64,000 bases of DNA from Adineta vaga (GCA_021613535.1 CP075493.1:13702001-13766000), one strand, 5' to 3'. Shown: positions 3,479 to 41,900, counted from the first letter of the stretch. The notes: generated from the sequence alone by a model not told the origin. Numbers and translations: made by a program.

Positions 3479-6400
3479 TTAATTGATGACCGAAAGATAA
3501 TGGTTGTAGATATCGTCTTGTAAATTGTTATTTAGTATTTTAATCTCTTCTTCAAACAAGATCGTATGTTCTTTATCGATATCATACGATGATTTTGCTA
3601 ATTTATCAATATACTCATTAAATTGTCCGTTAGCAAAATCTTTCTTGATTAAAATTAATGAATGAGTATTCGAATGATGATATTTATTGTTTTTAAATTG
3701 TTTGATTAATTTATAAATGATTGAATATCCATTTATATCACTAATGAAAAAATATGGACCACGTGGTTGTAAACGTCGAATTTGTTGAATATGTTCATCA
3801 ACTAATGGCTTTATAGATTGTAATGATAAATCATTTTCTGAATATTTCATTAAATAAATCGATGAAAAATGATTTGTAATTTTCTCGATAAATTGTTCAG
3901 TTTTGACTGATAAATCTTGAATTGAATTTTGAATAAAACAAAATAGAATTGGTTTTGAATTGTTATTTGTTAATTTTTCTTGATATAAACAATGTAACAA
4001 TGATAAATTTGTATATTGATCATCATCATTATCTAACATATGAATTTTTTCATGATTAATTTCACTTGTTGCTATTTTATTTGAATTGACTTGTTTCAAT
4101 GAATTCGATCGTTCATTTAATTTTGATAAAACACTTTGACTTAAATATTGTATTGTTATTCCTTGAAATATATCACTTAATGGTATTGATATAAATAATT
4201 CTTTTTCTAACCAATTTCGTAATGATACAGCCATTAAGGAATCCATACCTTGTTGATTTAAAGATTTTTCTATATCTATACGATCGATATTTGATGAACC
4301 AAATATTTGTGCAACGGCAGAACGAATTTTTTCAATAATTGTTTCAATATTCATTGAATTAACAGTTGTTTCTAATTGTTGATTAGTATTTGTATATTCT
4401 AATTGAAAATATTTTCTTTTAACTAAATCTTCAAGTACATTTGATTGTAAATGATCTAATTTAGAATGTAAACTAGACCAATTTAAAGCAAAAATAATCG
4501 ATGTCGAATAAGATTTTTGTTGTTGATTTTGAAATAAATTTTCAATCAATTCAAATGTTATTATTGGTGGAAGAAAAAACATATTAGCATCCGTTTTTAA
4601 TAGATGTTCGGAAATAGCTGAAATTTTTCGTTGTCGATGAAAAAATCCAACTTGAGTAATACCTGGCAAACTAATTGCAAGTGCTGGTTGTTTTAAATAA
4701 TTATATCGATAATAGGCTAAGGATTCCAAATATTGATTACCAGCATTATAGGCAGAAGCACCTAATTGTGCACATAAATGATTTCGAAGTGATGAAAAAA
4801 GAAGAAAAAAATGAAGAGGTGTTTGTGTAATTGTTGTTGTTTGATGTAAATTCCATGCTCCGAGAATTTTAGGTCGCATTACTTTAATTAATTGTTCATT
4901 TGTCATATTATGAATTAAGGAATCTTCGAGAACAAGTGCAGCATGAATAATACCACGAATAGGATAATTTGTTTGATTTAATTCTTTTATTAACTTATAT
5001 ACTTGATCATATTGTGTCACATCACATTTTCGTATTTCAACAATGACATTTTTATATTTCGTTTCAATTAAATGTTTTAAATTTAACCAATCTTTTAATT
5101 GATAACTATTACTTTGTTCAAATTCTTCTTGATTTTGTCGTGCCATTAAAATAATTCGTTTTACTTTACGTTCCATAATCATCCATTTTGACATTTCTAT
5201 TCCTAAGCCACCTGTACCACCGGATATTAATATAGTTCCTTGATTACAAACAGATGATGGAAATAATTGACAATCTAAATATTCTTACATATTCATTTGC
5301 ACCTTTACGATGTTATGATCTACTCACTATTTGGTAGTTCATCTTCTTCTACTGTTAATAATTGTTTTGCACCAGTAATTCGAACAATTTGTTTGCCAAT
5401 ATGTTTTGCTTGTTCATATAGATGAAAAACATCGATAATTTCTGATGGTTCATAAATATGTACTTGTTCAATTGGTTTTAATAAATTATTTTCAAATAAT
5501 TGTAAAATTTCGTTCAAAATTTCTTTCAATAATTTCGGTTCTGTTGATAAACAAGTAACTAAATCAATAATATGAAAACTACAACCAAATCGTAATTGAT
5601 ATAGTAATAAATCATATGTTTTTTCTGAATAAATATCTCTTTTACCAATTTCAATAAAATGTCCATGTGTTGATAATAATTTAATAGATTCTTGTAGAAA
5701 TTTTCCAGATAATGAATTTAAAATAACATTAACACCTTGTGGAAATATTTTTCGTATATTTTCAACAAATGATAAATCTCGACTATTAAAAATATGTATT
5801 AAATCAAATTTTTCTCTTAAATATTCACGTTTTTCGATTGTACCAGCTGTACAAATAAGATTTTCTTTTGAAATACCTAACATAAGACAATATTGTATGG
5901 CAGCTAGACCAACACCACCAGATGCCGTATGTATTAAAACAGTTTGATTCTTTTGTAAATGAACACGATATTTAAATGCATAGAAAATAGTTGAATAAGG
6001 CGTTGGAATTGATGCTAATTCTTCCATTGTAAATATATTCATTAGATTTTCTTGAACACGTACAATATTTGTTTGATTTATAATTAAATTTGATTGAAAT
6101 GCACTATTTTGACATGTACAACCAATAACAATATCGTTTATTTGAAATTCTTTTACATTTGATCCAATTCGTAAAATTTTCCCACTAAAATCTGAACCCA
6201 ATTCTTCATCACGAACATTTCCATCTTGTTGATTATATTTTAAACCAAATTCTGATGTTGCTGGATATAAACCTTTTGCTTTTAAGACATCACGAAAATT
6301 AATTCCAACACTATGAATTTCAATTTCAACTTCATCTGTATCAAGATATATTTCACAATCTTTCTTTAAAATCCATTTTAAATCTGATATAAATCTTGTG

Positions 6401-9400
6401 TTTGAAAGTTTCAAATAGAAATTTTTCTTTTCTGTTGAATTAGGAGAAATTACTGTTTGATAAATTTGTTGAATATCTTCTTTTTCTATATCATTATAAG
6501 ATGGTATATAACGTTTAATATCTGATGTTTCCAATAAGATAATTTCTTGATCAATTTGTTTTGAAGGAATATTGAATAAAACTAAATTTATTTCATTGAT
6601 AATTGTTATTAAGAAATGTTCTGATAGAGATGATGAACTATTTAAATCAATTAATTTCAAATAATTTGTTTTATATTCTTTCAATGCTGTTCGTCCAAAA
6701 CCAATAATAGGTGATTGAATTGGATCAATTGTTTGTCCGAGTGATATATTTTGAGCATTTTTTGTGAAAACAAATAGATAAGGAAGAATATTTGAATTTT
6801 GTTGTTTTATTATTTTGATTATTGTCATTAATGTTGTACAAAGAAATTCTTGTTGTTGAAAATCATTATTTTGTAAATCTAATGGCCATAAATATAGAAT
6901 ATTTATTTGTTTGAAACGTTTTATTGATGTTTGAAATAAATTGATTTCATTTTGATTAATATAAATAATATTATTTGTTTGTAAGAGATTTCCTAATTGT
7001 AAACCAATTTGATTGATTTGATCAGAAAAAATAATCCATCCTTGTTGTTCTGTATAATCATCAATGGTTTTTTGTGCTACAATTAATGATTCTTCAAATG
7101 AATTTGTTGTACTTGAATCAATTTCTTCAAATCCACCAACTTTATTAAATAATTCAAACCATTGATCAACTGATAACAATGAATGTGTACCTTTTTCTCG
7201 AATAGTATTCGAATTTGTTTCATTCAACGACCACCATTGAGATAAAGGACCATAAATAAGATCATTTAATGGATAATTTCCCGTACTTTCAACTAATATT
7301 AATAAACCATTCAATTTTAATAATTGTTTTAAATTAATTATTGATTGTTCAATATATGATGTTGCATGAATAACATTCGATGCAAATATAATATCAAATT
7401 TATTTTCATCAAATAAATGATTTTCTTGTTCATCTAAATCATATATATCATAGGATATTGTTAATAATCCATGTTGATTGTTTTCATTTAATAAAGATTG
7501 AAAATAATTTTTAGCTTTTGTAAAAAATGATGGAGATATATCTGTGAATATATAATGAATTTGTGTTTGAGTTTTATTAGCAAATTCAAGAAGAATTTCA
7601 AGAATTGGTATTGTTGATGCACCAGTTCCAGCACCAACTTCTAGAATAGTTAATTGATAATTAAATGATGGATATTTTCTTGATAAAATTTGTTTTTCTA
7701 AATAATTTGTTAAACTAGAACAAATTAATTCAATCATTGTTTGTGATATAATTAAATATAAATCTTGCATTAACAATTCATTTTCACCATTACCTCCAAA
7801 ATATAATTCTAATGGATCTAAATCTTCCGATAAAATTTTCAATAGATTTTCTCCCGATAATCGAATAAGATCAATAACGGATTGAATTGAAGGATATTTT
7901 TTAATTAATTGAATATAATCCAAATTCATTGAATGATTTGTTAATGATGTTGTATCAATTAATAATTGTCCAGTTTCATCAGTAATATTATATGTTTGAA
8001 AATACTTCAGAAAACTTTGAATTAATAAAATAAAATGTTGATTTTTATCATTTGTTTCATTCATCCATGGAAAATTATCAAATTGTTTAAGATTAATTTC
8101 GTTTAATTTTCCTTGATTATTTAATAATTGTTTAAACATTAATAAAACATAATTAAGAGCAAATTTATTTAAATGATCAATTCCATTAATTGAACAATGA
8201 TCACGTTCTGATTGACCAGTTTCAATACGATGACGAAGTGTTTCTGTATCAAAAAGTATTTTCGGTTTTGGTAACAATTCATTAAAATTCAAAACTATTT
8301 TCGATTCAATCCAATTCATTTGTAAACAATAATTATTGAATAAATATTTCATTTGATTATTATCATATGATGGTAAAATTAAATCATTTTCTTGAAATTT
8401 ATAGGAATGTAAATTAATTAATTGTTGCATTTTTAAATTTTCAAATAAAACAATTAAATTCTTCTTTTCTTCATCAAATAGAAGAATATCTGCTGAATAT
8501 TTGTAATTTTTTGTTATACCAATTGTGTGTGAATGAAAGTCTGTATAAGCATATAACATATTTAGATTTTTTTGAGGATAAATTGTTATTTTATCCACAC
8601 CTATTGGTACATATGCATAATTATCTTGTAATAATGTTAAACCACTTTGTAAACATGTATCAAGTATAATTGGATGTATATAATAATGAGATTTATCATT
8701 AACATGAGTATTGATTTCAGTTAAAACTTTTGATCTTGTACTAACAAATGATTTTATTTGTTGAAATAATGGTCCATAAGTGTTACCACGATTAGAAAGT
8801 GTTTTATATAGATTTTCAATATCTTGTTGTTCATTTAGTGAACATATTTGATTTTGAATTATATTATGTTGAATATCATCGAAATTATATAATGATGATG
8901 TAATTGTTTTCGAATTCAAATTTTCAATTTGAATAAAACCAGTTGAATGTAAACTCCATTGTTTGGATAGATAATTATGTAATTTATTTTCATTTTGATA
9001 ATCATTATCATCTAAAATATCATTTCCAGATAAACCTTTTTCTCTTACACAATCAGTTGATGTTCGACAACGACGACTATAAATAAAAAATTGTTTAAAT
9101 GGCATTTGTATAACTGTATGAATTTCTCTTGGTTGAGTTTCATTTAAAATACAAGCTTCTAAAAATTCAACATTATTCAATGTAATTGTTGAGAGTTCGG
9201 ATTCTTTTGAATAATTATATAATTCATTAATAGCAGCTAATATTAATTCAATATAACCTGTAGCTGGAAAATAGATTTGTTCTTGTACTTGATGATCTTT
9301 AAGATAAGAATATTCAGGTAATTGAAGATTAATTATTGATTTCCATGTAGGTAATTGTTGTTCCAATGACCATAAACGAACACCTAATAATGGATGATAT

Positions 9401-12400
9401 TGTTGACGTGTTGCACGACGTTGTAGAACAGATTCTTTCGATTCATACCAATAAAAATCATTATGATTAAAAGTAAATAATGGAAGAGTATCGAAGAATG
9501 AGAAAAATTTTTGAAATATTGGATAAGAACGTGTTGTTAAAAATTCTTTGAAATTCTTATTGTTAAAATTTAAATGAGATAAATTCGTTAATATTGTTTC
9601 TTGTTCATCTTCTTTTCGTTTTAATGAATAGTAAAGTTTTACTGCTCTATTATGACTATCAAAACATTGTTGAATTGATGTTGTTAAAACAGGATGTGGA
9701 GATATTTCAAGAAATTCAATATCTTCATTTGTTAGTAATTCAATAACTTTATTGAATTGAACTGCTTGTCGAACATTTGACCACCAATAATAATTATTAA
9801 ATTCAATATAATTTTCATCATTTGAATCTGATGATGTTAATTGACCAGTTACAGTTGAATATAATTTAGCTTGTGAACATTTTATATCAAATTTTTCTTC
9901 GTTCATTGTTCCTTTGATAGTCTTCAGAGAATCTAATAAATCTTGTTTAATATTAAATCTTTCCATTTGTTGACTATGAAACGCATTTTCAACTTTTATC
10001 CAAGTTTTGAATATTTTCGGTTTTAATATATTGAGAATTTCATATAATTCTTCCAAAATATTTGAATCTCCACTTAATGTTATCGATTTTGGACTATTAA
10101 TAGCTGCAATACAAACATGATCTTTAACATCTTTAATTAATTCTTCAATTTCTTTTTCATTCATTCCTACAGCTAACATTCGTCCATTTTGTCTTGTATT
10201 ACGATGTTGTAAACGTGAACGATGATATATAATTTCAATAGCTTCTTTGAATGATAATCGACCATTAATATAAGCAGCTGCAACTTCTCCTGCTGAATGT
10301 CCAATAATGATTTGTGGATATATACCCCAAGATAACCAAAGAGCAGTAAGTGCAATTTGAAGAGCAAATAAACAAGGTTGAGCAATATTTGTATCACTAA
10401 TTCGAGATTGTTCTTCATCTTTGTCAATTAATTCATCTAATAATGACCATTCATTATTAATTTGTTTTAATGCATAATCTATTTTCTCGATCCATTGACG
10501 ATAGATTGGTTCACTTTTATATAATTGTCGACCCATGGCAAACCATTGTGGACCTTGACCCGCGTATATAAAACATAATTTCCGTTTTGCATTTCTTTGT
10601 TTAATATCAATAGTTAAATCAATACCAGAAGGTAATTTATTATTACTTTCAGTAGTTAAGAAAGATGTTAAATAATTTTGAAATTGTTCAAGATCTTTAA
10701 CAAGAAATGATAAACGATGAGAATATGTAAGAGTACGATGTATTAATAATTTATGAGATAATTGTGTTAAGAAGAGTTTTTTCTGTTGTTGATCAAACTG
10801 ATTAGTTAATAATATTGATGATAACCATGAATTGAATTTTTCAATTTGATTTCTTAATGATTGTTGACATTTACCTAAATAAGATAATAAAAGGAACTAT
10901 TATAGTACAATTCTTATGGAACAAAACAAAAAATGAAATACATAATGAAGTAGGTGTTTGTCAGAAAGAATAGAAGAAGTTTTTGTTGAGAAAACTTTCA
11001 TGTGATCTCTTGAGTTTGGATAAATAAATCTTATGAAATCTATAATTCTTTTTTTGATAAAGTATTTTTAATGGTTATCAATGTTTTGTTCATTATACTT
11101 CATAAGACATAGTTAGATCTTTATCCGTTAAAGTTCAGACCAGAATAATAGATATGTTTTACTGTATGATACTCGCTACATTCTGCGCCTAGTAAAGATT
11201 TCTACTCTTATATTCTTGAAAAATAAAACAACATACTTGAGAATATTAAAATGAAATATTGTTCATTATCATTCCATACTCTTTCAATTGATTCGTTAGT
11301 CTTTTGTGCCTCAATTATAACTGGTTGTTTATATTCTTGTACAATACAATGTGTATTATTTCCACCAATACCAAATGAATTGATTCCAATTAAAATTGGT
11401 TCATTAGTTGTTTCTTTTATTTCTGGAAATTGTATTGTATGTTGAATGATATGTAAATTATATTTTTTTGCTTTAATTTTTGGATTTAATTGTTTAAAAT
11501 TCATTTGTGCTGGTATCATACGGTATTTCATGCAAAGAGCAACTTTAATTAATCCAGCTATACCAGATGCACCTTCGGTATGACCAATATTGGATTTAAT
11601 TGAACCAATTAATAATGGACAATCATAGTGTGAACGATTAAAAAACTTTCCAATTGTATTTGTTTCAACTGAATCACCAACTTGTGTTCCTGTTCCATGT
11701 GCTTCAACATAAAAGATTTGTTTGGGATCAATTCGTGATTGATTACGTGAATAAATTTCTTCCAATAAACTATATTGTCCAAGTGGTGATGGTGCTGCAT
11801 AACCAGTTTTTTCTTGTTGACCATCATGATTCGATAGAATATCTCGAATTACACAATAAATAGAATTTCCATCTCGTTCAGCATCCTTTAATCGTTTTAA
11901 TAAAACTAAACCACAACCTTCGCCTATAAATCAAACATAAAGACAATTTTCATCACATACGACTATAGAATGGGAAATTTTCAATAGATTTAGTATATCT
12001 GAAAACGAATTTTGTAAAGGAAAGTTTTGCTCTTTCATCTGTCAACACTTCTAAGCATAGTTAAATTTCTTCTGTTTGAAAAGATATATTTACCTTTTCC
12101 ATAACCATTTGCATCTTGACTAAATGATTTCGATCGACCATCTGTTGCAACAGTTTCTGTTGTAGATGCATCTAGAAACATATCCGGTGAATAAATTGTA
12201 TTAACACCGCCTGCAATAGCGAAATTTGATTCATTATTTCGTAATGTTTGACAAGCAAGATGAAGTGCTTGAAGTGAAGATGAACATGCACTATCAAGTG
12301 CTAAATTCGGACCATGTAAATCAAAATGATATGCTAAACGTGCTGATGCATTAAATAAGATCATTGATGGTTGTAATAAACGTTTTCGTTCTTCTAATGA

Positions 12401-12820
12401 TTGTTTCATCATTGTTTGTTGATGATCCGTTGAATATTGACCGATATGTACAGATGTCTTTGTTCCACGTATTTCATCAATTGTTAAACCAGCATCTTCA
12501 ATTAAATGAACAAATTTTTTTAATAATAAACGATGAGCTGGATCAAGTAATAATGCATCATTGTCAGTTAAACCAAAATATTGTGGATCAAATTTATCCA
12601 ATTGATCATTTTTCATAAAATAACCACGTTGAATTAATTTTTCTTTTAATGTTGGATTTATTTTAATTAAATCTGCAGTAAATGACTGTAGATCTAAACG
12701 TTCTAATGGAATTTCTGAGTTAAGATCAATCTGTTCTGTCAGAACATGCCATAGATCATGTGGACTCTCAATACCATTAGCAAATGAACATGCAATACCG
12801 ATAACCGCTATTGGTTCCAT
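3479..12820 (-). CDS. Highly reducing type I polyketide synthase, KS-AT-DH-cMT-ER-KR-ACP-(degenerate TE), 4 exons, 2918 aa
   Basis: Exons 12820-12094, 11923-11237, 10874-5328 and 5274-3479 join in frame through GT-AG introns (11924-12093, 10875-11236, 5275-5327). Motifs: KS DSACSSS, EAHGTGT, KSNIGHT; AT AGQGPQW, GHSAG, NAFHS; DH HPLLG, DHQVQEQIYFP, HPIILD; MT ILEVGAGTG; ER LIHTASGGVG; KR GGTGGLG and AYNAGN; ACP GMDSL. Confidence 0.93.
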
Positions 12821-12927
12821 GTTAATCTATTGTTTTAAATTAAATATCGAAGTAAAAAATAGAATCTAAAACAAAAAATAAATTCCAATTATAAAATCAT
12901 AAAGAAAGAACAAAAAAAAAGTAAATT

Positions 12928-15900
12928 TTAAAAAACAACTCTTCTTGCTGGATATCCTTGATATTTTTCATATTTTTTTAAATGATCATCTTTCATAATT
13001 AATGTCAATGGATATAATATATTATTTCCATCTAAATGAGCACCAGATAGAACAATTGTATGTGGATACATGATTGTATTTTGACCAATTATACAAGATT
13101 TTAATTTGAATAAACGTTGTTCATATGTATGTGACTATAAAAGAGAAAATTTGTTTTAGTTGAAAAAGAAAATAAAACATACTTGAATATAAGCAAGATG
13201 TATTCGACAATTATCTTCAATAGTTACATATTTAAAATCATATAGAAGATGATAATCAGTGATAATTACATTTTGACCAATTTGACAACCCAAATAATTT
13301 AATAAAATAATATAAAATTGAGTGGATTCAAGAAATCGACCAATTAAAATGGAATATGATCGAATGAAATTTATTTTTATATTATTCATAAAATTGAATT
13401 GTTCATTGATGAATTTTTCAAATAAATAAACTAATATTGAATAAAATATTAGGAATAATAAAGAACTAATGAAAGGTATTGATGAACAAGATAAATATAT
13501 ATAAATAATTAAATATTTTTCAATACAAATTTGACATATTAATTGAAATATTGATTTTGATTTCATAGCCATTTTAATTCTATTCTTATCATTTTCATTT
13601 ATGACTAAAATAGAATAAGAATAAATCAAAAAAAATTCATTTGAAAAATTCATCTATCTTATTGTCTTTTGACGGAGTGGGTACCAAATCATATACTCTC
13701 TCAAGGTCTATAGATTTATCTTTCCTTCACACAAAAAACAAAATTCTATCAACATACTTTCTGGCAACTTGAATGGCATTTGTTTTGCTGGTATACCCAA
13801 TAGAATACGATTTGTTTCATTGCAATCAATTTCATTTGTTAAACGAGTTCCTGCTCCAATCATTGTATTATTAGATATCTTTGTTCCTGGATGTATTGTA
13901 CAACAATTTCCAATCATTGTATTATGATCAATTTGTATATCATCCGTTGAACAATAGAATGAATTTTCTGGATTTAAATTAAATGGTACAAATAAAACTT
14001 TGCCAACAGTTGTTAAATGATGATTTAGTTTCAATAAATTTGACGGATATTTTAAAAAGAAATTAAAATCCGCTATTTTTATTTGAGTTTGATCTTGAAT
14101 TATTGTACCTAACCATTGAAGTATTTTTGGATAGACATTATGATAACCATCAAAGAATTTAAATGAATAACCAAAACTATGAACAATTAATTGTCTTAAC
14201 CAAAATTTATGTACAAAATACCATGAATTCATATGAAAGCATCCTTTTTTAACATTACCAATACAATATTTTAATAAAATCAATGTGATTATAATGCATA
14301 GAAATGACCAGAGAATAAAACAAATTGAAAGAGAAAAAAAGAAATATATTTTTGAATAAAAACACATTTGAATAATTATTCCATGTAAACAAATAATAAA
14401 TATTAAACAAATCAATTGATAAAGACTTATTAATTTCGATTGATGAATGTTTTCATTAATAATTTGTTGATCATTTTGATTATGTTCATAACCATCAATA
14501 ATTACATGTGATTTAATATAACCAGTAACAGATGACATTGATTTAACAAAAACATTATTTTCCATATGAACACCATTGTATAACACTGATCGAATATCGA
14601 TTAAACAAGATGAACCAATTTGAATTCGATGAAGTTCATAAGTTGTTAGTTGATAAGATATTGATGTCATAACAACTTCAAATGATATGAATGTATTATC
14701 GTCAATATCTAGAAGTTCTGGTATATCAATTAATGTTGTATTAATAGAAACATTTTGTCCAATACGTGCACCACATAATCGTTAGGAATTATAATAAGAA
14801 GTACCAATTACATGTTCGAGCCAGAAGGAATTTAATTTCCATATTTGATGTATGAACCAGTAACGATAATATTTTAATGAAAATAAATTTTCTTTACCTT
14901 TACTTTGATTTCCACCTAAGAGATTTTTCCAAAAAATATAACTCATTAAATGCATAATTGGTACTAATATTAAATACAAAAAGATTGTTAAAAGACTATT
15001 ATTGGTTACATATGATGTTAAATTTGAAATGAAATATATTGGAAATAGAAAATTTACAACTAACATTATTACACCAATAGTTTCAATAATTAAATTTGGT
15101 TTCGGATATTGAATATCGTCATTAATCTCATTGTCTAGTTCAATAGATGATGATTCTATTAATGGTTGAAGAATCGTAGCTAATTGATGAATCGATGGAT
15201 TCGAATATAATAAATTAACATCCATATTAGCATAGATTTGTTCTCGAATTAATGTTAATAAATGCATTGCCATTAAAGAAGTTCCACCTAATTCAAAAAA
15301 GGATCGACAAATATTTATCGATGATGTTTTCGATAAATGAAACGATTCAATGAATAAATCATGTAATTTCTGTTCTAATTCAGTCGAACAAATTAATGAT
15401 CTTGGATCATTATTATCTTCAATTAATCGATCGAAATCTGGTTTTGGTAATTGTTTTCGATCGACTTTTCCATTTTGATTCAATGGAAATTGTTCCATAA
15501 ATATAAATAGAGATGGTATCATATATGGTGGTAAATATTCTTGACAATAATCTTTCATTATTTCATTTGTTAAATCTTTTGTATTTATTGTTTGAATATA
15601 ACCAATAAGATATTCATGATCATTACTTTTCATTACTAAACAATTACTGATGTGGAAAGACGACGATGATGATAATTTCATAATGATTTGTTCAATTTCA
15701 TTTAATTCAATTCTTTGACCACGTAATTTTATTTGAAAATCTTTTCGACCAATAAAATGAATCAAACCTTGTTTATCATATCGAACTAAATCTCCACTAC
15801 GATACCATTTCTCATTGTTTTGTTTATTTCCTATTTGGATGAGAACTTGTTGAGTTAGTTGTGATTGATTTAAATATCCAGAAAATACACCCTTTCCACC

Positions 15901-18900
15901 AATAAATAGTTCGCCAACAGAATCTGTTGGAATCTGTTGAAGATAATCATCGAGAATTAAACATTGATAACCAGGTAATGGTCGACCAATTGGAATTATT
16001 GAATGTTCATCTAGATTATCATAATTTGTAATCAATTGAATTGTACTAGTTATTGTTGTTTCTGCAGGCCCATAAAAATTATATAGATGACATTTTTCAT
16101 TCAGAAATGGAATGAGACTGTTTACTGTAGATGAATAAAGTTGTCCACCTCCTATTGAAACACGTTTAAGTGTTTGTAAGATATTTTGATTATTTCTCTG
16201 CCAATATTGACCTAATAATTTTGCGTAACTTGGTACCAAACTTATACGTGTAACTTGTTTTGATTGCATCAAATGTGATACATATTGAAAATCAAGATTT
16301 CCTTTGGAATGACATAAAACAAGTGTACCAGCAGAAGTTAATGTTCCTAAGATTTCTTCCATATGTACATCAAATGTACATTGTGATAATTGTAAATAAA
16401 TTACATTTGAATCGAATAATTTTGTTTCGAAATATGCATTTAGAGACAAGAGAAAATTTTCATGTTTTAATTGAATTATTTTTGGTATTCCAGTTGAACC
16501 TGATGTAAATATACAATAAGCGATAGAATGAGTTTTTATTGGAAATTCTTTCATTTTGAGATTTATTTGACTATTGAAATATATTTGTTCAATATTAATA
16601 AATGTACTTGATAATTCTGTTCGAATTTTGTCATCAAATTTATTTTCTGTTGATTGATGAATTAAAATATATTTCGATTTGGTTTCATTGATTAATAACA
16701 GTAAACGTTGTGGTGGATCATTTGGTGACAAAGGACAATAGATTCCACCACACATCAAGATCGATAAGATACCAATAATCATTTCAATTGATCGATCAAT
16801 ACATTGACAAACAATTTCTTCTGCTTTGATATCGAGTGAATGTGATACTAATTCAACATAATATAATAATTCACTATAAGTAAGTGATTGTTCATCTAAA
16901 ATGATGGATAATTTTTGTGAATATAATTGAGATTGATTAAGAAACAAATGATGAATATAATCAGATTTGAATTGATTTTTATAAGAATATGTTGGAAGAG
17001 TTAATCCATTTATTATTTCTTGTTCATATGGTAATATAAGCGATAATTCAATCATAGATTGTTGTTGTTTATTAAATGTTGAAGTAAATATTTGCTTTAA
17101 AAAGATCTCAAATCGTTGTGATATTTGTTCAATAGTTGAATGTTTAAATAAATCTGATGAATATTGAAATAGACAATTCATTGTATTTTCATATGAATCA
17201 AAATTAATAGTTAATAAAAAATCAAATTTCGAAATAAATAATTCATTTGTATCATTATTCATCAATGAAAATGTTTCAGTATTTGATAATGAATTAAATA
17301 GAAATGGTATGATTTCTGATATTAAAATTTGTTTTTCTCGATAAATTTCAACTATTTCTTGATAGGGTAAATATGAATATTCCATTATGTTAATAACTAT
17401 ATTTCGTATTTGTTTCATAGTTTTATCGAATGTTTCTTGCGGTTGTATTTGAATATGACATGGTAATATGTTAACAAACATTCCAATCATTGTTTCAAGT
17501 TCTTGTCGATAACGATTTGCATGAATTAAATGTAAACAAATATGTTTTTCATTATGAATTAATTTAAATAAAAATATGAAATAACAAGTTAAACATAATT
17601 GAAATAATGTTAATTTATATTGATTTGAATAAATAATCATTTCATTAATTAACTTTTCATCTAAATCTATTTTAACAAAGGAACCAAAACCAGATCTTTG
17701 TTTTTTACTTGATTTCAAATGATAATCATATGGTAGGGATAATTGATTATATTCAGTAGAATTTTCATTGAGCAATTTTAACCAAAAATCTTTTGCTTGA
17801 ATCATATTCATTTGTCTTTCATACTGTGCATAATCAATATAATTTAATGATTGTTCACTAAGATGAAATTTTTCATGATAGAAAACCATTTGAAAATCAT
17901 TTAAAAATATATCAAAAGAATAACCATCAAATGCAATATGATGAATATTAAATATTATATAGTCGTCATTATTCTTCACTTGTTTTATTAAATGACAACG
18001 AAATACAAGACCTTGTTTTAAATTAAAATAATTTGTCGTTTGTTCATTGTTCAAGATTTTCCTTAATTCATTTTCATAATCATCAACAATTGTGGTCATT
18101 TCAAATATATAACATGTCGATGTTAATGGTTGAATTCTTTGTTTTAAACAATTATCTTTTGATGAATAGATTAATGCTGTACGCAATACAGAATGTTTTT
18201 CAAGTAAAAATTCTAAACTTCTACGTAGATAATCAATTGATATTTCTTTTCCATGATCTTTCCTGATTTTATACAAATATGGCATATTATAAATTGCTAA
18301 TCGATTATTTTCATCTTCTTTTGAAAATCTCATCTGTTCATCTAACCAAATACGTTCTTGTGCATACGATGCTTCACCTTCAATTATATTTAATGTTTTC
18401 CAACAAACACTTTCTTCGAACACTCTATTCTTTGATAAAGATATCAGCTTTGCATGTTGTTTTATAGTTGATTCAACAAATAGTTCAGAAATTTGTCCAT
18501 TGAAATCGAATTTCATTTGATATTTTGAAAATAATTTCATTAATAACAAAGAATTTCCACCTAATGAAAAGAATGAGGTTGTCATCGATATTTTATCTCT
18601 CTCAAACATTTCACACCATATTTCATAGATTTCATTTTCTAATCGTGTTTTCGGTTCATCATTGAGGTCGTTTAACAATGTTAATAACAAATGATGATCT
18701 ATTGATAACAATTGTTTTCGATCGATTTTTCCATTTTGATTCAATGGAAATTGTTCCATAAATATAAATAGAGATGGTATCATATATTGCGGTAAATATT
18801 CTTGACAATAGTCTTTCATTATTTCATTTGTTAAATCTTTTGTATTTATTGTTTGAATATAACCAATAAGATATTCATGATCATTACTTTTCATTACTAA

Positions 18901-21900
18901 ACAATTACTGATGTGGAAGGACGACGATGATGATGATTTCATAATAATTTGTTCAATTTCATTTAATTCAATTCTTTGACCACGTAATTTTATTTGAAAA
19001 TCTTTTCGACCAATAAAATGAATCAAACCTTGTTTATCATATCGAACTAAATCTCCACTACGATACCATTTCTCATTGTTTTGTTTATTTCCTATTTCGA
19101 TGAGAACTTGTTGAGTTAGTTGTGATTGATTTAAATATCCACAAAATACACCCTTTCCACCAATAAATAGTTCGCCAACAGAATCTGTTGGAATCTGTTG
19201 AAGATAATCATCAAGAACTAAACATTGATAACCAGGTAATGGTCGACCAATTGGAATTGATGAGAAATGTAGATCATCTTTTGTAATTAAATGATATGTT
19301 GAATCGATAGTACATTCAGCAGGTCCATAAAGATTTATTAGCTGACAACTGCTAGGAAGATAGTTGAATAGTTTTCTCACAAGTTCACTCTTAATTGCTT
19401 CACCTAAAATATATACAGTACGTAGGTTTTTGTGAACAATAAGATAGTTAGTTTAAATACCTGAAGAGCAGCATATTCGAAGAGATTGAAAACACTGCAA
19501 ATCAGTATTCTCTGATGTTTTCTGTCGTTCTATTAAATAATCAATTAGAATGTTGAAATGCGTCGGAACACTGTGCATATAAGTTGCTTGATGACAATCG
19601 ATGGTTTTCGCTAAATAACTCAAATCTAAATTTCCATTCGGTTTCAGCATAATTAAACATGAACCAATTACTAAACTGCCTAATATTTCTTGAACATGAA
19701 TATCAAATGAACAAGGAGTTATTTGTAACATTGTATCTGAACTATTGAACATATTGAGTTGATTTAAAATTCGAATACAAAAAACGAAATTTCTATGAGA
19801 AATTTGAGCCTATCAATGGAAACAACGGTATTAACGATTATATTACAACTAAAAAAGTTATGTAAACATACGCCTTTAGGTAGACCAGTTGAACCTGATG
19901 TAAATATACAATAAGCAATATCTTCGATTATTTGTTTATGTGACAACAACTCAAAATCATGTTTACTGTTGTTGTTCATTAATATTTCGTGTTGAATATT
20001 GATACAGTTTGTTTTGGAAAATAGTTCATTAAATTTTCGTTTTGTAAGTTCATGATAAAGAACATGCTTTGCTTTTGTCTCATTAATTAATGAAAATAAA
20101 CGTTGTTGTGGATCATTTGGTGACAAAGGACAATAGATTCCACCACACATCAAGATCGACAAGATACCAATAATCATTTCAATCGATCGATCAATACATT
20201 GACAAACAATTTCTTTTGCTTTGATATCAAGTGAATGTGATAGTAATTCAACATAATATAATAATTCACTATAAGTAAGTGATTGTTCATCTAAAATGAT
20301 TGATAATTTTTGTGAATATAATTGTGATTGATCAAGAAATAAATGATGGATAGGTCGAATTTGATCAAGAGATCGTTCTGATCTGATGTTGCTGCTGATG
20401 GATTAAGCTGATCAATGAGTTGTTGTTCATGTGGTAAAATAATAGATAATTCATAGATCGATTGTTTTTGTCGATGAAATAATTGTCTGAGTAACAAATG
20501 AAATCGTTGTGATATTTCCATAATAATTTCATGTTGAAATACATCAATTGCATATTCAAATGAAATATCTATATGATTTTTCTCCAAATAATGATTAATA
20601 TTTAATGTTAAATCAAATTTCGTTATATTTATTTGTTGTTTATTATTTATTTTCTCATCATAATTTTCTAAAGTAGTGTTTTCAGCAATCTTAAATGTTG
20701 ATTGATTTTGAATTTCATGAAATAAAAATATTGTTTGAATAAAAGGTAGAGATTGCTGTTGAACATGAGAATGAAGTTTGAGAATTTCTTGATAAGGTAA
20801 ATATCCATGTTGTAGGATATCAAATAATAATGATTGAATTTGTTTTAAAATCTCATCAAATATTTGTGCTGGTTCAATTTGAAAACGAAATGGTAATGTA
20901 TTAACAAACATTCCAATCATTGATTGTGTTTCATAATGATAACGATTTGCATTGAGAAAACCAATACATAAATCTTGTTGTTGTGTCAATTTATATAAAA
21001 ATATAAAGTAACAAGTTAACATCAATTGAAATAATGTACATTGAGTTTGTTTTGAATATTTGAGAATTTCTTCAATTAAATCATTTTCGAGTGAAATGTT
21101 AATATGAGAACCAAAACCGGATCTTTGTTTTGATGCTTTTTTTATTTGATTCGAAGTTGAGAGTAAATTTAGTTGTTGACTCGAATCATAATTATTTAAT
21201 AAATTTGTCCAAAAGTTTCTCGCATTTGTCATATCCATATCTCGTTCGTGTTGTGAATAATCAATGTAATGAAATTCTGTTTTCTCAAGATCTTCATTTT
21301 CATATGCAAGTTGAAAATCCTTGGAAAATATTTCTCGAGAATAACCATCAAATGCGATATGATGAATATTAAATATAATAAAATCATTTTCAATTAAGTC
21401 GACTTCATCATTGTTTTCTTCTTCTTCTTCTTCTTGTTGGTATTTGATCAGATGACAACGAAATACATGTCCTTTTTGCAGATTAAAATAATTTGATTTT
21501 CTTGCATCTATTAGAATGTGATTTAATTCATCTTGATTATCTATTCTTTGGATTAGAAAATCATACGGTTTAAATGTCAATGGTTCCACTCGTTGTATCA
21601 GACATTCTTTTTCTTCATTATACCAAAGACTTGAGCGTAATACATCATGTTTTGTTAGTATACATTCAATTGCAATTTTTAACTTCTCAATCGATATTTT
21701 ACCTTGTTTTACTCGAAATATTATTGGCATATTATAAACTGCTAATCGATTTTTTTCATCTTCTTTTGAAAATCTCATCTGTTCATCTAACCAAATACGT
21801 TCTTGTGCATACGATGCTTCACCTTCAACAATATTTAATGTTTTCCAACAAACAGTTTCTTCGAACAATCTATTCTTGGATAAAGACACCAGTTTTGCAT

Positions 21901-24900
21901 GTTGTTTTATAGTTGATTCAACAAATAGTTCAGAAATTTGTCCATTGAAATCGAATTTCATTTGATATTTTGAAAATAATTTCATTAATAATAAAGAGTT
22001 TCCACCCAATGAGAAGAATGATGTTGTCATCGATATTTTATCTCTCTCGAACATTTCACACCATATTTCAGAGATTTCATTTTCTAATTGTGTTTTCGGT
22101 TCATCATTGAGATCGTTTAACGATGTTAATAACAAATGATGATCTATTGATAACAATTGTTTTCGATCGACTTTTCCATTTTGATTCAATGGAAATTGTT
22201 CCATAAATATAAATAAAGATGGTATCATATATTGTGGTAAATACTCTTGACAATAATCTTTCATTATTTCGTTTGTTAAGTCTTTTGTATTTATTGTTTG
22301 AATATAACCAATAAGATACTCATGATCATTACTTTTCATTACTAAACAATTACTGATGTGGAAAGAGGACGATGATAATTTCATAATAATTTGTTCGATT
22401 TCATTTAATTCAATTCTTTGACCACGTAGTTTTATTTGAAAATCTTTTCGACCAATAAAATGAAGCAAACCTTGTTTATCATATCGAACTAAATCTCCAC
22501 TACGATACCATTTCTCATTGTTTTGTTTATTTCCTATTTGGATGAGAACTTGTTGAGTTAGTTGTGATTGATTTAAATATCCAGAAAATACACCCTTTCC
22601 ACCAATAAATAGTTCTCCAACAGAATCTGTTGGAATCTGTTGAAGATAATCATCAAGAACTAAACACTGATAACCAGGTAATGGTTGACCAATTGGAATT
22701 GATGAGAAATGTAGATCATCTTTTGTAATTAAATGATATGTGGAACCAATGGTACATTCTGAAGGACCATAGAAATTAAATATATGGCAGTTGGGTGATA
22801 GATATTCCATTATCTTTTCTACAGTCTTTCCTAGGACAGTTTCTCCTTGAAGAAAGAAAATTTAAGTTCGGAAATAGATTTGGTTTTTATCTTGTGTACT
22901 TACCTCCAGTGAGTAAACATCGTAGGGTGTTAAGCATATTTTTAGGATTGGCATTATACAGAGTTTCTATATATTGACATAACAGTAGCAACACAGATGG
23001 TACTAAGAAGATAAATGTAATTGTTTTCTGTTCAATTAAATCGACTAAATAATTGATATTTAAATGACCATGTCTATGTAGCATTATAATAGTTGCTCCA
23101 AAGGTTAAACTACCCAATATATCTAGTAGATGAAAATCAAATGAACATTGTGATATTTGAAGAACCATATCATTCGAGTTTAGCATATTAGAAAGCTTGA
23201 ATGATTCTCTTATCACTGTAAAATTTTTATGAGTAAATTGACCCTAAAACAATAGTGAAAAAGAAATAAGAATTTATGTACATCCAATTTGGACAATAAT
23301 CTGATAATCGATCTATATCTGAGTATTGTCGTATGTTTTCTATCTTACCGCTTTTGGTAGTCCAGTTGAACCTGAAGTAAATAAAATATACGCAACATCA
23401 TCTTCCGATATATTTATATTCGTCAAATTATTGGCTTTTATCATGGAAAATCTTCCATCAAAGATAACTTGTTCAATGGAAATGAACTGAAATGTTTGAT
23501 TATTTTCATGTTCATAATGTACAGTATTGAACTTTTCTTGTGATAAATAATGAACAAGAATACAAGTCGAGTTTGTCTCTTTAATTAATGAAAATAAACG
23601 TTGTTGTGGATCATTGGATGACAAAGGACAATAGATTCCACCACACATCAAGATCGATAAGATACCAATAATCATTTCAATTGATCGATCAATACATTGA
23701 CAAACAATTTCTTTTGCTTTGATACCAAGTGAATGTGATACTAATTCAACATAATATAATAATTCACTATAAGTAAGTGATTGTTCATCTAAAATGATGG
23801 ATAATTTTTGTGAATATAGTTGAGATTGATCAAGAAACAAATGATGAATAGGTTGAATTTGTTCAAGAGATCTTTTTGATGCTGATGTTGCTGCTGATGG
23901 ATTAAGCTGATCAATGAGTTGTTGTTCATGTGGTAAAATAATGGATAATTCATAGATTGATTGTTTTTGTTGATGAAACAATTGTTTGAGTAACAAATGA
24001 AATCGTTGTGATATTTCCATAATAATTTCATGTTGAAATAGATCAACTGCATATTCAAATTGAACGAATATTTTTCTTTGTTTTAGAATATCGTATTTTA
24101 TAACTAATGATAAATCAAATTGTGATAGACCAATATTGTCTTGATTATTATATATATCAGTTAATTTCTGTAATATTGTTTGATTATTATTTAAAAGAAA
24201 ATCAGTTTTTTCTACAATTGGCAAAAGTTGAAGAGTTGTTTGTATAAATGATAATAATGAATGATTTCTTTGAGAAAATTGAAGAATTTCTTGATAGGGT
24301 ACATGAGCATAATTCATTATTTGTAAAAATGTTGCTTTTAGTTTCTCAGCTATTTCTTCAAACGTCTGTTTTGGTTCAATTTGAAAACGAAATGGTAATG
24401 TATTAACAAACATTCCAATCATTGATTGTGTTTCATAATGATAACGATTTGCATTGAGAAAACCAATACATAAATCTTGTTGTTGAGTTAATTTATATAA
24501 AAATATAAAGTAACAAGTTAACATCAATTGAAATAAAGATAAATTCATTTGATTCATTTGTTGAATAATTTGTTCAACTAATTCTTCTTCTAATTCAAAA
24601 CTGATTAGTAATGCTAGACCTGATCGATCACCTTCAGTTTTTGACGATAAAGAAGAATATGGTATTGGTAATTTTTGATTAAAATCATAATTCGAAAATA
24701 AGTCTCTCCAAAATGAACTTAAATGATGATGATCATTTTTAAATAATTCTTCTTCATAAACACTATAATCAATATATTGTAAATCTTCTTTATGAAAATA
24801 ATTTCCATCCAGATTATCATAAAAAGATTTTAAACTATTTAATAATAAAAGAAATGATGAAGCATCAAAAACAATATGATGTAAATTCAACATAATAATA

Positions 24901-25424
24901 TCATCTTTATTAAGTGTATCATTATCATTATTATTTAATTTTATTATATGACATCGTAGAACAAAACCATTATCCAAATCAAAATAATTTCTTTTCCATT
25001 CATTAGACAACAATTCTTTTATAAATTCATCATTCATTTTATCATATGTTGTTAGTTGAAATAAGTAATATTCATCATGTTCAATGTCATCTAATTTATT
25101 TGGTAGTAATTTAATATGTTGTTCTAAATGATTAGTATTTGAATTATATTTATATGCTGTTCGTAAAACGGAATTATATTTAATTACATTTAATAATGCG
25201 AAACGAAAACGTTGAATAGATAAAGTACCATGATTGATTTGAAATATTGCTGGAACATTATAAACTGGTGATGTTTGATGAAAATAAAGTTTTTCATGTA
25301 ACCAAATACGTTGTTGAGCATAGGAAGCATTAGCTTTTGTTAAATTTGTTTTCTTTATTTTTATATTTTTAGCTGATGTTTCATTTGTAATGATACGCTT
25401 TCGTTTGATTGCGGCGATATTCAT
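12928..25424 (-). CDS. Three-module NRPS (C-A-T)x3 with a C-terminal Pls/PosA-type membrane domain, 7 exons, about 4000 aa; one frameshift and one in-frame stop as assembled
   Basis: Exons 25424-23349, 23243-22904, 22845-19872, 19809-19461, 19403-13758, 13604-13183 and 13134-12928, all joined by GT-AG introns. C motifs HHIVFDA, HHIAFDG, HHIAFDG; A motifs TSGSTGxPK, YGPxE, YRSGDL, NGKxDR; T motifs LGGNSL, LGGNSL, LGGTSL. The tail has TM helices, hexapeptide repeats and ends QSHTYEQRLFK...YQGYPARRVVF*. Lesions at 20382/20383 (-1 nt) and 14782-14784 (TAA). Confidence 0.9.
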
Positions 25425-26802: not shown

Positions 26803-27720
26803 CTATTGTTCTGTTGTTATTTGTGTATTCGTTGATAATGAATATGGATGAAGTTGTTCGACAATTAAGTTTTCTATTTTCCATTGTTCAATATATGCTA
26901 ATGTATATTTTCGTTCAATCATCATGGTACAAACTTGTAAAATAGCACATCCAGCTACAACTATACCGAATACAATTTGTCCATAAATAAAAATCGAATT
27001 CACTGATAAATTTAACGAAATGAAAATTATTCGAAAAATAAATTCAATAGAAAAGGCTGTTATCCAAACACATGTCATAAAATAACATGAAATACGAAAT
27101 GATGAACAATGATCATAAATCCATGCGTAAACTTGAGCTGCTTCCTTCATATTAGATAATATTTCTTTCTTTTTATCATCTTTAAGTTCAATATATCCAT
27201 TATTATCAAATATAACATCGGGTAATCCAAATTCTGCTCGAGTGATCGGTATTAAATCAGGATAAAAATAGTAGACTATTGGACGTAATTGACATCGATT
27301 ACAACAATAATGAAATGGAATTAATGTAATAGCGAAAACAACAGCTCCTACACCGGTAAGTAATGATTTTTCTAATAGAAGAATTTTTGGACTCTTTAAT
27401 ACCAAGGCTAAAACAGCCGAAGTGATAAAAGCTATAAACATAACAAAACCGATAGCATCGAATGAACGTACCCATATAATTTTGACGATAACCATAAAGA
27501 AAGGAGGACTACTGGCAGCTAAAAGAGCATAAACAGGTTTGATACGATTTTCCAGAACAAAATAAATTAGAAGTGGAATAACTATATCGATTAAACAGAT
27601 AATAATCATATGAGGAATATGATGTTTAAATGTATTCCATGGAGAGATTTTTGGTTTTTGCGACGATAATTCTTGTCGTTGAAGTGATTCACTTGAAACA
27701 AGTTCATAGTTTGAAACCAT
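26803..27720 (-). CDS. Multi-pass membrane protein, VC0807-family-like (microbial type)
   Basis: Intronless 305 aa. Pattern DIVIPLLIY..ALLAASSPP..FDAIG..PKILLLEKSLLTG..RPIVY..W...FR....T.VW....EF..R matches my recollection of VC0807-type proteins. Confidence 0.6.
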   Translation of the reverse strand: MVSNYELVSSESLQRQELSSQKPKISPWNTFKHHIPHMIIICLIDIVIPLLIYFVLENRIKPVYALLAASSPPFFMVIVKIIWVRSFDAIGFVMFIAFITSAVLALVLKSPKILLLEKSLLTGVGAVVFAITLIPFHYCCNRCQLRPIVYYFYPDLIPITRAEFGLPDVIFDNNGYIELKDDKKKEILSNMKEAAQVYAWIYDHCSSFRISCYFMTCVWITAFSIEFIFRIIFISLNLSVNSIFIYGQIVFGIVVAGCAILQVCTMMIERKYTLAYIEQWKIENLIVEQLHPYSLSTNTQITTEQ

Positions 27721-38972: not shown

Positions 38973-41900
38973 ATGAATGAGATTACCAAACGTGCCGAAG
39001 ACGCAATCTATCAATTAATAAACGAGAATTCACCCGAAGCTCGATACAGAGGAGACACCGAATTAAAAGCTGTCTATGCTGCTTTTAGAGCACTACGAGA
39101 AACATCTACACACCATGAATGGACTCCATTAGTTCTTCAACAATTGGCTCGAATGATGGATTGTAATGAATCTCTTGATCGACAATTTTGGTTGGAAATT
39201 CATCAGGATATTCGATATTTATTAGATAAGTTACATACAGAACAGAATCATCGATATTGGGCACGATTTCAAGCAAGAATGAAATTAGAAGAGAAAATAC
39301 AAGAACGAAGAAGACAGTTTGAAGAAATGTATGGAGAAAGAAAGACTCTGTATGAATTATGTGTGGAACACCGTCATTTTTTACTTGGTTATCTTCAAAA
39401 ATGTATTTCTATTCATTCAAAAATAGAAATATGTAATTTAATAGAAAATATCGATGAATTGAAAAGTCTTAAAATTGATTTTGATTGTTCAAGTACATCA
39501 TTAGAATCAATCGATCCATCAAACTCGTCATTCACTCAGTCATCTGATACTACTGGAAACAATCCTCGTGCATTTTTACCATCACTTGAAAAATATACTC
39601 TCTCAGGAAATAAACGAAAGAAAACAATTCGAGATTTATTACAATCAAAACGATGGTTGGTAATTTTAGGTGGTCCAGGATATGCTAAAACAACTTTACT
39701 TCGATGGATCATGCATATTTCAGCTAGAGCAGCACTTCAACATATTGCAATGAATTCATTTGAAAAGGATCTGTCCTGTTTATTTCGTCTTCCGATTTTC
39801 ATTCGAATCGATGCATTTGTTGAATGGTTCGAACAACACCAAAATTCGACTTTATTTGATTATCTAACTAAACACATTTCCTCGTCAGAAGTCGATCAAG
39901 ACGAAAATGCTTTAAAAGAGTTTATTATACATGGATATGCATTAATTCTTTTAGACGGTTTAGATCAAATTGTTGATGTTGAACGAAAAGGTGTAATAGT
40001 TGATCAAATTCGAAACTTTCTTGATAAATATACTTGTACATGGCATTTTCTCTCGCCATTTGATAAAGCATTATACAAAGATAAAGATATGTACGGATAT
40101 TCTCCTACTATTTATGAAACTCAATTGCTAAATTTAGCTGCTGGAAACCAAGTTATTATTACTAGTCGTGTTGTTGGTTATCACATCCATTCGTTGAATG
40201 GTCCATTCATTGTTCATTATTCATTATTACCACTAACGGACGACGAAGCTGATCGATTTGTTCAAAATTGGATGGAACAAGTCGAACGGAGTATTTCAAC
40301 TATTTTAACGACAATGAACAAGGATATTTTTCAGATCAAACGAGACAATGTTTTAAAAGTTATTTTCGATAAAAATACAAAATTTACTATGTTAAATCCT
40401 GATTTATTAACTTTTATTTGTATGTCTATGATTACATTATCCGATGAATTTGATCCAAACTGTCGATTACAAGTCTATCATCGTGCTATTCAATTAATCA
40501 TACGAATGTGGAATAAACAAAATTCTACTATATCCGAACATATTTTCATTGAGTTTCTAACTGATCTTGCCGTTTATTTACAGACTGAATCACCTTCTGG
40601 TCTTATCGACGAATTCGATGTAGAACATTTATGTTATTTAACGTATAAACGATATCATAAATCAGTCAATCGTACTGAACTTCGTCGATTTACAGATGAA
40701 TTAACTTCAGCACTTGGTTCAAATATTGGAATTACTGCTGAACGAGGATGGCAAGTATTTGGTTTTTTACATTTATCCTATCAAGAATATTTTGTTGCAC
40801 GAGCTTTCGTCGAACGTTCATCGACCAGAGATCTTGCAGAACGTTTGCATGGTTTTGTAATTTATCCACGATTTCGTGAACCACTATTATTAGCGCTTAG
40901 TTGGATCAGTTGGCAACGATCAAAAGAGCAATTTGATGAATTTTGTCGAATATTTCTTGAAAAACAATCAGCAGATTTCATCATTCCACTGGGAACACTT
41001 GTATTTCTCGAAGCTCTCACTGACATGTGTAAACTTCCATCGAATGATATTATTTTTACAGCATTAAACATTCTCTTAGATCATCAATCATATCATATGT
41101 TTGCCAATCATTGTTTCACTACTTTATCGATATTATCCGATGAAATAAAATTAGAATGGATAGAATTGCATTTAACTGATGAACAACGTTTTTACCGTTT
41201 TTGTCGTTATTTATTAGCTGAAGAAGTGATCGATCGTTTTACTTATCTTTCGAAAGTTTTGTCACCAGTTGTTTCTAAACAATTGTGGTTAATCAGTTGT
41301 AAGTATCAAACAAGAGAGTTTCTTTTTTATCAAACTCTTTCTCGAATAATCACGCGAAACAAACCATTTGATAATATTATTCGAAATACTCTATCGACAT
41401 TTCTTATTTCCAAGAATATGAATCTAACAGATATTCATCCATTGATCTTCTCTGTAATCATTATTTTATACGGTGGTTTAGTTAGAGACGACAAGTATAA
41501 TCGTCATATGATTCAATTTTCACCATATCAAATGTATCGACAATCATTAACTTTATTTCCTATTATTGAATATTTTGTTAACAAGAAAGAATCTCATTTA
41601 ATCAAAGTTCAACGACTTATTGAACAATACATAAGTTTTCTTCGCCGATCATCATCCGAAGATACTTCAGTAGATATCATCGATACTTTTGTTGCACTTA
41701 TTTGTTTACGTGGTCTTACACAACCATTAGACTATCAAGAATTCGATGGATATCAAGCATTACCATTAGCAATGAAGAAATTTAAGCAGAATTTATTTTA
41801 TACAAAAAAAAAAGAATTATTTGATATTTCAGAAGTTCAAACAATTCTCAATGTATTTGCTTCACAATCGAATGTATCAAATGAACAAATCATGTTGTTT

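Follow-up and report, generated by a model that had tools for sequence, protein, structure and literature searches.

Corrected anatomy of a catalogued nonribosomal peptide synthetase and polyketide synthase gene pair on chromosome 1 of the bdelloid rotifer Adineta vaga

A nonribosomal peptide synthetase (NRPS) gene and a polyketide synthase (PKS) gene lie on the minus strand at positions 3479-25424 of a 64,000-nucleotide stretch of chromosome 1 of the bdelloid rotifer Adineta vaga (assembly Av20, CP075493.1). This stretch, hereafter the window, is 13,702,001-13,766,000 of the chromosome; a published coordinate therefore equals the window position plus 13,702,000, and window positions are used below. 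The limits of the pair are exact, 25424 marking the NRPS ATG and 3479 the final base of the PKS stop codon, and the large open frames between them are all on the minus strand. We are nearly certain that this is a real, host-resident and previously catalogued NRPS and PKS pair. It is region1.7 (Chrom_1 13699568..13746939) in Supplementary Data 9 of Nowell et al. 2024 (PMC11258130; Nat Commun 15:5787), where it is entered as "intact", with 6869 aa and the additional domains "LbetaH; NRPS_term". The six published open reading frames (ORFs) of region1.7 are the present ORF coordinates plus 13,702,000. Since region1.7 was published with these same ORFs, the suggestion of an earlier note, made from the sequence alone, that the domain combination and the clustering might be undescribed does not hold. 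Locus, extra domains and clustering had all been recorded before, and the locus is a member of a published class. What we add to the published entry is a corrected anatomy and a warning on the reference sequence and its annotation.

Domain content and exon structure

Exons were searched singly against profiles and databases. With Pfam and NCBIfam, the exon-sized open frames of the minus strand gave, in order, three condensation-adenylation-carrier (C-A-T) modules, a terminal hexapeptide/TIGR02353 region (NRPS_term), and then KS, KS_C, AT, DH, C-methyltransferase, ER, KR and ACP domains. Pfam E-values across the locus ran from 1e-10 to 1e-66, far past chance (C1 5e-59, C2 4e-60, C3 2e-52, A3 6e-66, KS 1e-53, AT 7e-52, KR 2e-34). 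The earlier note had described a three-module NRPS and a complete highly reducing PKS, head to tail on one strand; profile matches and motifs bear out the modules and the PKS, but the NRPS is not one clean frame in the reference, where a 1-nt deletion and a TAA interrupt it.

Introns were inferred by combining shifts of frame with GT-AG pairs and with the alignment of bdelloid homologues. Nine GT-AG introns of 48-362 nt emerged, six in the NRPS and three in the PKS, with donors that all read GT[AG][AT]; the earlier note had arrived at the same number of spliceosomal introns. Two open frames of 56 aa (23397-23230) and 55 aa (11067-10903) were rejected as exons because they lie within introns backed by homologue alignment. 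The features of the NRPS gene are as follows.

12931..25424, minus strand: NRPS gene (Pfam, intron search, homologue tblastn, public-model mapping, exon arithmetic)
25424-23349, 23243-22904, 22845-19872, 19809-19461, 19403-13758, 13604-13183, 13134-12931, minus strand: NRPS exons
23348-23244, 22903-22846, 19871-19810, 19460-19404, 13757-13605, 13182-13135, minus strand: six NRPS introns, GT-AG
21896..25334, minus strand: module 1, with C1 25334-23916 (HHIVFDA at 24881), A1 23825-22574 (introns 23348-23244 and 22903-22846) and T1 22078-21896 (LGGNSL)
18500..21814, minus strand: module 2, with C2 21814-20417 (HHIAFDG at 21364), A2 from about 20327 (introns 19871-19810 and 19460-19404) and the T2 serine motif at 18564
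15175..18369, minus strand: module 3, with C3 18369-17062 (HHIAFDG), A3 16929-15466 (intronless) and T3 15369-15175 (LGGTSL)
12934..15100, minus strand: Pls/PosA-like terminal domain (Pfam hexapeptide, TIGR02353, homologue alignment)
13757-13605 and 13182-13135, minus strand: introns within the terminal domain

The NRPS exons add up to 12011 nt, where a whole number of codons would need 12012, and the product has about 4004 aa when both lesions are discounted. Three C, three A and three T domains, arranged as repeated C-A-T units with their catalytic motifs, place the protein among multimodular type I NRPSs. The core motifs A3, A5, A8 and A10 of the A domains are present (TSGSTGxPK, YGPAE, GRKDFQIK and NGKxD), as are the carrier serines of the T domains. 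The protein begins with a C domain and has no loading A-T unit, and Pfam searches upstream found no further domain-bearing frame. The first and second A domains each carry two introns at homologous positions, after PK(G/A) of motif A3 and before GE, and the third carries none.

At the DNA level the three modules form a mosaic, in which near-identical A-domain ends surround diverged pocket segments. The start of the A domain (about 150-300 nt; 16633-16932, 20028-20327 and 23526-23825) and its C-terminal half (about 600-750 nt; 15449-15961, 18710-19222 and 22155-22664) are mostly 94-99% identical across the three modules. For the T domain, 94-99% identity is confined to modules 1 and 2; the C domains share about 50-60% and the pocket segment 25-50%. 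To judge from this pattern of identity, the mosaic looks like the product of gene conversion or of a recent sub-domain exchange around diverged specificity segments.

The PKS gene, which follows the NRPS on the same strand, is made up as follows.

3479..12820, minus strand: PKS gene, 2918 aa (Pfam, intron search, homologue alignment, exon arithmetic)
12820-12094, 11923-11237, 10874-5328, 5274-3479, minus strand: PKS exons
12093-11924, 11236-10875, 5327-5275, minus strand: three PKS introns, GT-AG
12820-11330, minus strand: KS (DSACSS, HGTGT, NIGH)
10536-9574, minus strand: AT (GHSAG, NAFH)
9396-8413, minus strand: DH (HPLLG)
7713-7147, minus strand: cMT, the C-methyltransferase (LEVGAGTG)
6339-5383, minus strand: ER (HTASGGVG)
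5240-4667, minus strand: KR (GGTGGLG, YNAGN)
4333-4139, minus strand: ACP (GMDSL)
3482..4138, minus strand: thioesterase-like tail, 219 aa (weak PF00975 match)

The PKS exons sum to 8757 nt and encode 2918 aa with zero internal stops, and an AATAAA lies about 55 nt past the stop codon. The Pfam families found were ketoacyl-synt, Ketoacyl-synt_C, Acyl_transf_1, PS-DH, Methyltransf_12, ADH_zinc_N/ADH_N, KR and PP-binding. A single KS-AT-DH-cMT-ER-KR-ACP module with all checked active-site motifs present is the make-up of a fully reducing type I PKS. These motifs include the Cys-His-His triad of the KS, the catalytic histidine of the DH, the SAM motif of the cMT, the nucleotide-binding motifs of both ER and KR, and the carrier serine of the ACP. 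Judging from the single module and from its likeness to mycocerosic acid synthase, the PKS presumably works iteratively. In the thioesterase-like tail the nucleophile elbow GxSxG reads SDING, the serine being replaced by isoleucine, and the domain is truncated. The corresponding tail of the Didymodactylos carnosus homologue was recognised as a true Thioesterase. The earlier note had mentioned neither this tail nor the terminal domain of the NRPS.

The NRPS and the PKS are very probably two genes

The two synthetases are very probably two separate genes and not one hybrid. They are divided by a short spacer.

12821..12930, minus strand: NRPS-PKS spacer, 107 nt, closed in every one of the three frames by stops; TTTTAG, rich in pyrimidines, occurs at about 12866, and AATAAA is absent

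The C-terminus of the NRPS coincides with the end of the TIGR02353 profile, with the end of the homologue in A. ricciae and with the end of the public gene model, and the KS domain starts at profile position 1 on its own ATG. A hybrid of the fungal type would have one frame with the PKS first; here the NRPS comes first, its stop codon (12931-12933) is followed by the stops of the spacer, and the PKS has an ATG of its own. A single NRPS-PKS polypeptide of about 6900 aa would need a splice from the NRPS end to the PKS start. The published estimate of 6869 aa assumes such co-translation, and a GTTGTT donor ahead of the stop (about 12945) could join the frames with an AG at 12827. This donor, however, differs from the GT[AG][AT] of all nine others, the splice would delete conserved C-terminal residues common to the A. 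ricciae homologue and TIGR02353, and the public model terminates at the NRPS stop. We also know of no precedent for a soluble PKS of 2900 aa behind a membrane-embedded terminal domain, which counts further against a hybrid. We regard the fused polypeptide as highly improbable.

The NRPS ends in a Pls/PosA-like terminal domain

Three hexapeptide (left-handed beta-helix) regions in the terminal domain of the NRPS are set apart by hydrophobic helix pairs at about 15099-14930, 14442-14250 and 13512-13410. The TIGR02353 match covers profile positions 109-457 and 581-695, the profile end (695) falling on the stop codon at 12931-12933, and the final residues match both the end of TIGR02353 and the C-terminus of the A. 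ricciae homologue. The topology is that of TIGR02353: the domain is the last of the protein, directly follows a T domain, and has transmembrane helices between tandem hexapeptide-repeat domains. By its sequence it is a distant relative of TIGR02353 and not an equivalog.

In epsilon-poly-L-lysine synthetase Pls and the Pls/PosA family, a membrane region of the same build, with helix pairs between three hexapeptide/acetyltransferase-like domains, likewise stands directly after T. Enzymes of the Pls type consist of one A-T module, lack C domains and build a homopolymer from one amino acid; their terminal domain forms amide bonds with a free amine. The region1.7 NRPS is not a homopolymer synthetase of this kind, since three canonical C-A-T modules precede its terminal domain. 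The scores of that domain lie far below the family cut-off of 423 bits.

Two single-frame loci elsewhere in the same genome, C1:11882475-11884550 and C1:880858-882927, gave full-length TIGR02353 matches of 512 and 508 bits, above the cut-off. On these scores they are candidates for genuine Pls/PosA-type synthetases encoded by an animal.

One of two breaks in the reference NRPS is contradicted by independent reads

The reference breaks the NRPS frame twice.

14782..14784, minus strand: in-frame TAA, from loss of TTT from TA[TTT]A, within the most conserved motif of the terminal domain
20382..20383, minus strand: frameshift within the C2-A2 linker, where the base following 20383, a C in module 1, is lost from the non-homopolymer context ACATCAG[C]ATCA; no GT..AG accounts for the shift

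At the first lesion the window reads GTSYYNS*RLCGARIG, where 12 out of 12 paralogues have GT.(F/Y/L)YN.YL(R/C).CGA. The second was called relative to the 96%-identical linker of module 1. Both lesions and two of the nine introns fall within 14600-20599, the interval over which we checked contigs from four runs, two of DNA (2013, 2022) and two probably of RNA (2024). None of the runs containing the stretch is recorded as RNA; of the sequence words sampled, 8-9% occur in the two runs taken to be RNA.

Every contig over the TAA site, from the two DNA runs and one probable RNA run, carries three extra bases that restore NSYLRLCGA. Both haplotype backgrounds, distinguished by A or G at 14773, nine bases off, hold these bases; the 3-nt deletion therefore seems to be a mistake in the reference or a change private to it, and not one of two alleles. 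The TAA stop is without support in independent read data. At 15408, between A3 and T3, an in-frame 3-nt indel adds an Asn (DNNNDP versus DNNDP) in both DNA runs and is missing from the window and from one probable RNA contig; it is probably a true allelic difference.

The public model of the NRPS (UJR17611.1 / I4U23_004507), which has 3646 aa and is the single member of its sequence cluster, is affected by both lesions. Its introns 20494-20382 and 14805-14719 cover them and remove conserved sequence, and the supposed donor at 14805 is read through, without splicing, in one probable RNA contig (14743-14937). Two further introns, 24131-23790 (342 nt) and 21823-21293 (531 nt), lie inside an open reading frame, and the latter removes the catalytic HHIAFDG of C2; these two are probably annotation artefacts caused by the repeated modules. 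We consider all four introns doubtful.

Relatives and paralogues

The best protein matches to both genes were all bdelloid, at 33-41% identity (PKS 41%, Didymodactylos carnosus; NRPS 38%, Adineta steineri and A. ricciae), and the next were bacterial, many of them cyanobacterial, at 26-30%. Protein searches with the two large exons turned up paralogues and other species, none above 41% identity, and no second allele of the locus. Among solved structures the nearest were Brevibacillus LgrA (linear gramicidin synthetase) for the A domain, with the GrsA chain (1AMU) ranked 13th, and mycocerosic acid synthase for the PKS (236 bits, versus 165 bits for fungal LovB). The earlier note had drawn an analogy with adjacent highly reducing PKS and NRPS genes of fungi; with bacterial proteins as the nearest non-rotifer relatives and with these structures, the analogy is weak. 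Bdelloid-only close relatives, bacterial next-nearest relatives and a place in the Av20 inventory together point to a horizontally acquired bdelloid cluster. About 40 nonribosomal peptide (NRP)/PKS clusters have been mapped in the A. vaga Av20 assembly, and bdelloid PKS-NRPS clusters have been described as horizontally acquired (PMC11258130).

A search of the A. vaga genome (100.8 Mb, six contigs) found about 10 KS paralogues at 50-55% identity and about 15 terminal-domain loci. Seven of the 10 paralogous KS loci have a co-oriented NRPS_term 10-104 kb downstream, and at an eighth the two are convergent (C4, 14.89-14.91 Mb). PKS and NRPS_term thus form a recurrent unit. The following are examples, given as the KS position and the NRPS_term position.

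C3:340495/236083
C3:1565735/1650453
C3:19942483/19873545
C5:673304/699904
C6:13756933/13709362

Among the paralogous clusters of this genome, only the window locus has a PKS directly downstream of the terminal domain. The closest Didymodactylos PKS has no NRPS in the short flanks of its 20-kb contig.

Genomic setting and expression

The genes flanking the pair encode three rhodopsin-type G-protein-coupled receptors and NACHT, ankyrin, FG-GAP, EamA and F-box proteins, in keeping with the ordinary metazoan neighbourhood that the earlier note had reported.

38973-44939, plus strand: NACHT protein, 1988 aa, single exon
45600-46562, 47650-48591 and 51425-52393: three rhodopsin-type G-protein-coupled receptor genes
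52648-53832: EamA-type transporter
54201-56216: ankyrin-repeat protein

The EamA-type transporter is the sole neighbour that might conceivably serve export. No acyltransferase or CoA-ligase helper genes were seen among the neighbours in the window. On the same strand as the NRPS and 1.4 kb upstream of its start, a 305-aa open frame (26803-27720) is without a Pfam match.

Three highly repetitive modules invite local assembly errors, and we considered whether the block is a contaminant or a chimeric assembly join, as the earlier note had asked. Beyond that repetitiveness we found nothing in favour. The genes carry spliceosomal introns, the GC content of the exons (0.26, versus 0.29 for the whole window) is below that of the host-like flanks, animal genes stand on either side, the locus lies 13.7 Mb into an 18.1-Mb chromosome contig, and the stretch is present in contigs of runs from seven studies, 2013-2024. 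These observations argue for residence in the host, and we give a foreign or chimeric origin next to no chance.

Baseline expression of bdelloid clusters is mostly very low, and part of them is induced by a fungal pathogen (PMC11258130). No probable RNA contig crosses either of the two introns within 14600-20599, and no exon joints were seen there. The weak RNA signal fits the low published baseline, without proving transcription. Only two A. vaga NRP/PKS gene models are induced by the fungus, one intronless and GC-rich, the other a heptapeptide-type hybrid in two copies (PMC11258130). Both differ from the three-module, intron-bearing, AT-rich region1.7, which is an argument by exclusion and not a mapped result.

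A possible route from the PKS to the NRPS

On balance we favour, by a modest margin of belief, the explanation that region1.7 is a two-gene cluster derived from bacterial-type synthetases that were acquired long ago and later gained introns and a host-like AT-rich composition. With an NRPS that starts at a C domain and a C-methylating, fully reducing PKS, the methylated, reduced acyl-peptide proposed in the earlier note is the most sensible reading of the domains. The PKS would build a saturated, methyl-branched acyl chain, which would remain on its ACP because the thioesterase remnant lacks the serine. Since the NRPS has no loading module and the PKS no working release domain, the chain may be handed over to C1 as the starter, and three amino acids would then be added. 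The terminal membrane domain might finally free the acyl-tripeptide at the membrane by transfer to an amine or to water, a reasonable guess in view of the Pls topology and the amide-forming role of this domain in Pls. We infer here the iteration, the PKS-to-NRPS hand-over, the release chemistry, the product and any antimicrobial role. That the PKS and the NRPS are partners in this manner is a tentative proposal, to which we give not quite even weight.

The logic has parallels in known systems. In fungal clusters of a highly reducing PKS and an NRPS (emericellamide) and in hybrids (LovB-type, psoA), an NRPS that begins with a C domain receives a reduced polyketide acyl chain. The fungal proteins are not the nearest relatives, however, and the rotifer genes are separate and ordered NRPS then PKS. 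Closer in sequence are mycocerosic acid synthase, an iterative fully reducing bacterial PKS that is the best solved-structure match, and the cyanobacterial KS-AT-DH-cMT-ER-KR-ACP synthases, which have the same domain set and are the best named non-rotifer protein matches; the rotifer gene shares only 26-30% identity with bacterial PKSs and differs from them in its introns and its degenerate thioesterase-like tail. The PKS-NRPS hybrid cluster AVAG|g48151 likewise combines, on one strand, a multimodular NRPS with a bdelloid PKS and is of the horizontally acquired type, but its predicted product is a cyclic heptadepsipeptide and the fungus Rotiferophthora induces it (PMC11258130), whereas region1.7 has three modules and its PKS downstream. 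The published region1.7 entry describes the same locus, chromosome, six ORFs and domain labels in a table row that assumes hybrid co-translation, without the two-gene structure, the introns, the lesions, the dead thioesterase tail or the reversed gene order.

Weighing the alternatives

Several observations weigh against the explanation given above. The order NRPS-then-PKS is opposite to that of seven paralogous clusters, and both genes are without close paralogues or orthologues (41% and 38% identity at best). A KS tree had been called for in the earlier note; in trees built for KS and for terminal domains from 11-13 paralogous loci, the window copies stand on isolated long branches and the KS tree is a star. 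On such branches co-inheritance of the pair could not be shown, and the trees neither support nor refute it. The curated TIGR02353 cut-off (423 bits) is not reached by the terminal domain, the exon pieces of which scored 54.1, 11.4 and 34.7 bits, with 62.9 bits in a six-frame search of the genome. The probable RNA amounts to six short contigs at depth 3-4 that map to NRPS exons within 14600-20599 and are unspliced. Among the read contigs over that interval, none has an insertion after 20383 and none was shown to bridge the site.

Some of these observations would suit a cluster in decay, in which the frameshift cuts the NRPS off behind module 1 and C2 and leaves a pseudogene or null allele, with the PKS surviving alone or also decaying. 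The 1-nt deletion stands in a non-homopolymer context against a near-identical module 1, the depth pattern suggests a half-depth contig that matches the window at about 20400-20599, expression of the locus is very low, and other Adineta species have no close orthologue. Downstream of the break, however, open frames and intact catalytic motifs continue for more than 7 kb. The TAA is contradicted by three independent data sets, so reference indels at this locus are not to be trusted, and Nowell et al., who did mark frameshifts in other clusters, listed this one as 'intact' (PMC11258130). We think decay unlikely and incline somewhat towards an NRPS that is intact in the living animal. The reversed order also bears on the partnership, since adjacency could be the remnant of a rearrangement. 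The two genes would then be mere neighbours in what is left of rearranged tandem clusters and make separate products, the NRPS being primed by an acyl-CoA of primary metabolism and the PKS product being released in another way; that the trees give no sign of inheritance as a unit agrees with this. Yet the PKS lacks a working release domain of its own, the NRPS lacks a loading module, the gap is merely 107 nt on the same strand, and a PKS and an NRPS with a terminal domain co-occur at most paralogous loci. Unconnected neighbours are accordingly improbable in our judgement.

Significance

Bdelloid rotifers are the one animal group known with dozens of bacterial-type NRPS and PKS clusters, which are candidate sources of antimicrobials. 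As region1.7 was already inventoried, this general picture is unchanged. The false stop from the 3-nt deletion, the possible 1-nt deletion and the four doubtful introns matter for anyone who would express the pathway or predict its product. Biochemical study is most warranted for two features, the terminal domain of Pls type that closes a multimodular NRPS and the dead thioesterase of the PKS. Taken to its full extent, the proposal is of an animal multimodular NRPS with Pls-type membrane release of an acyl-tripeptide, the starter of which comes in trans from a neighbouring iterative C-methylating PKS with an inactivated thioesterase; we put this forward as a speculation that is more likely wrong than right. 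To our knowledge, no multimodular assembly line has yet been shown to free its product by a Pls-type route. If the proposal is true, release of the product would be coupled to the membrane, possibly with export or with aminolysis by a free amine.

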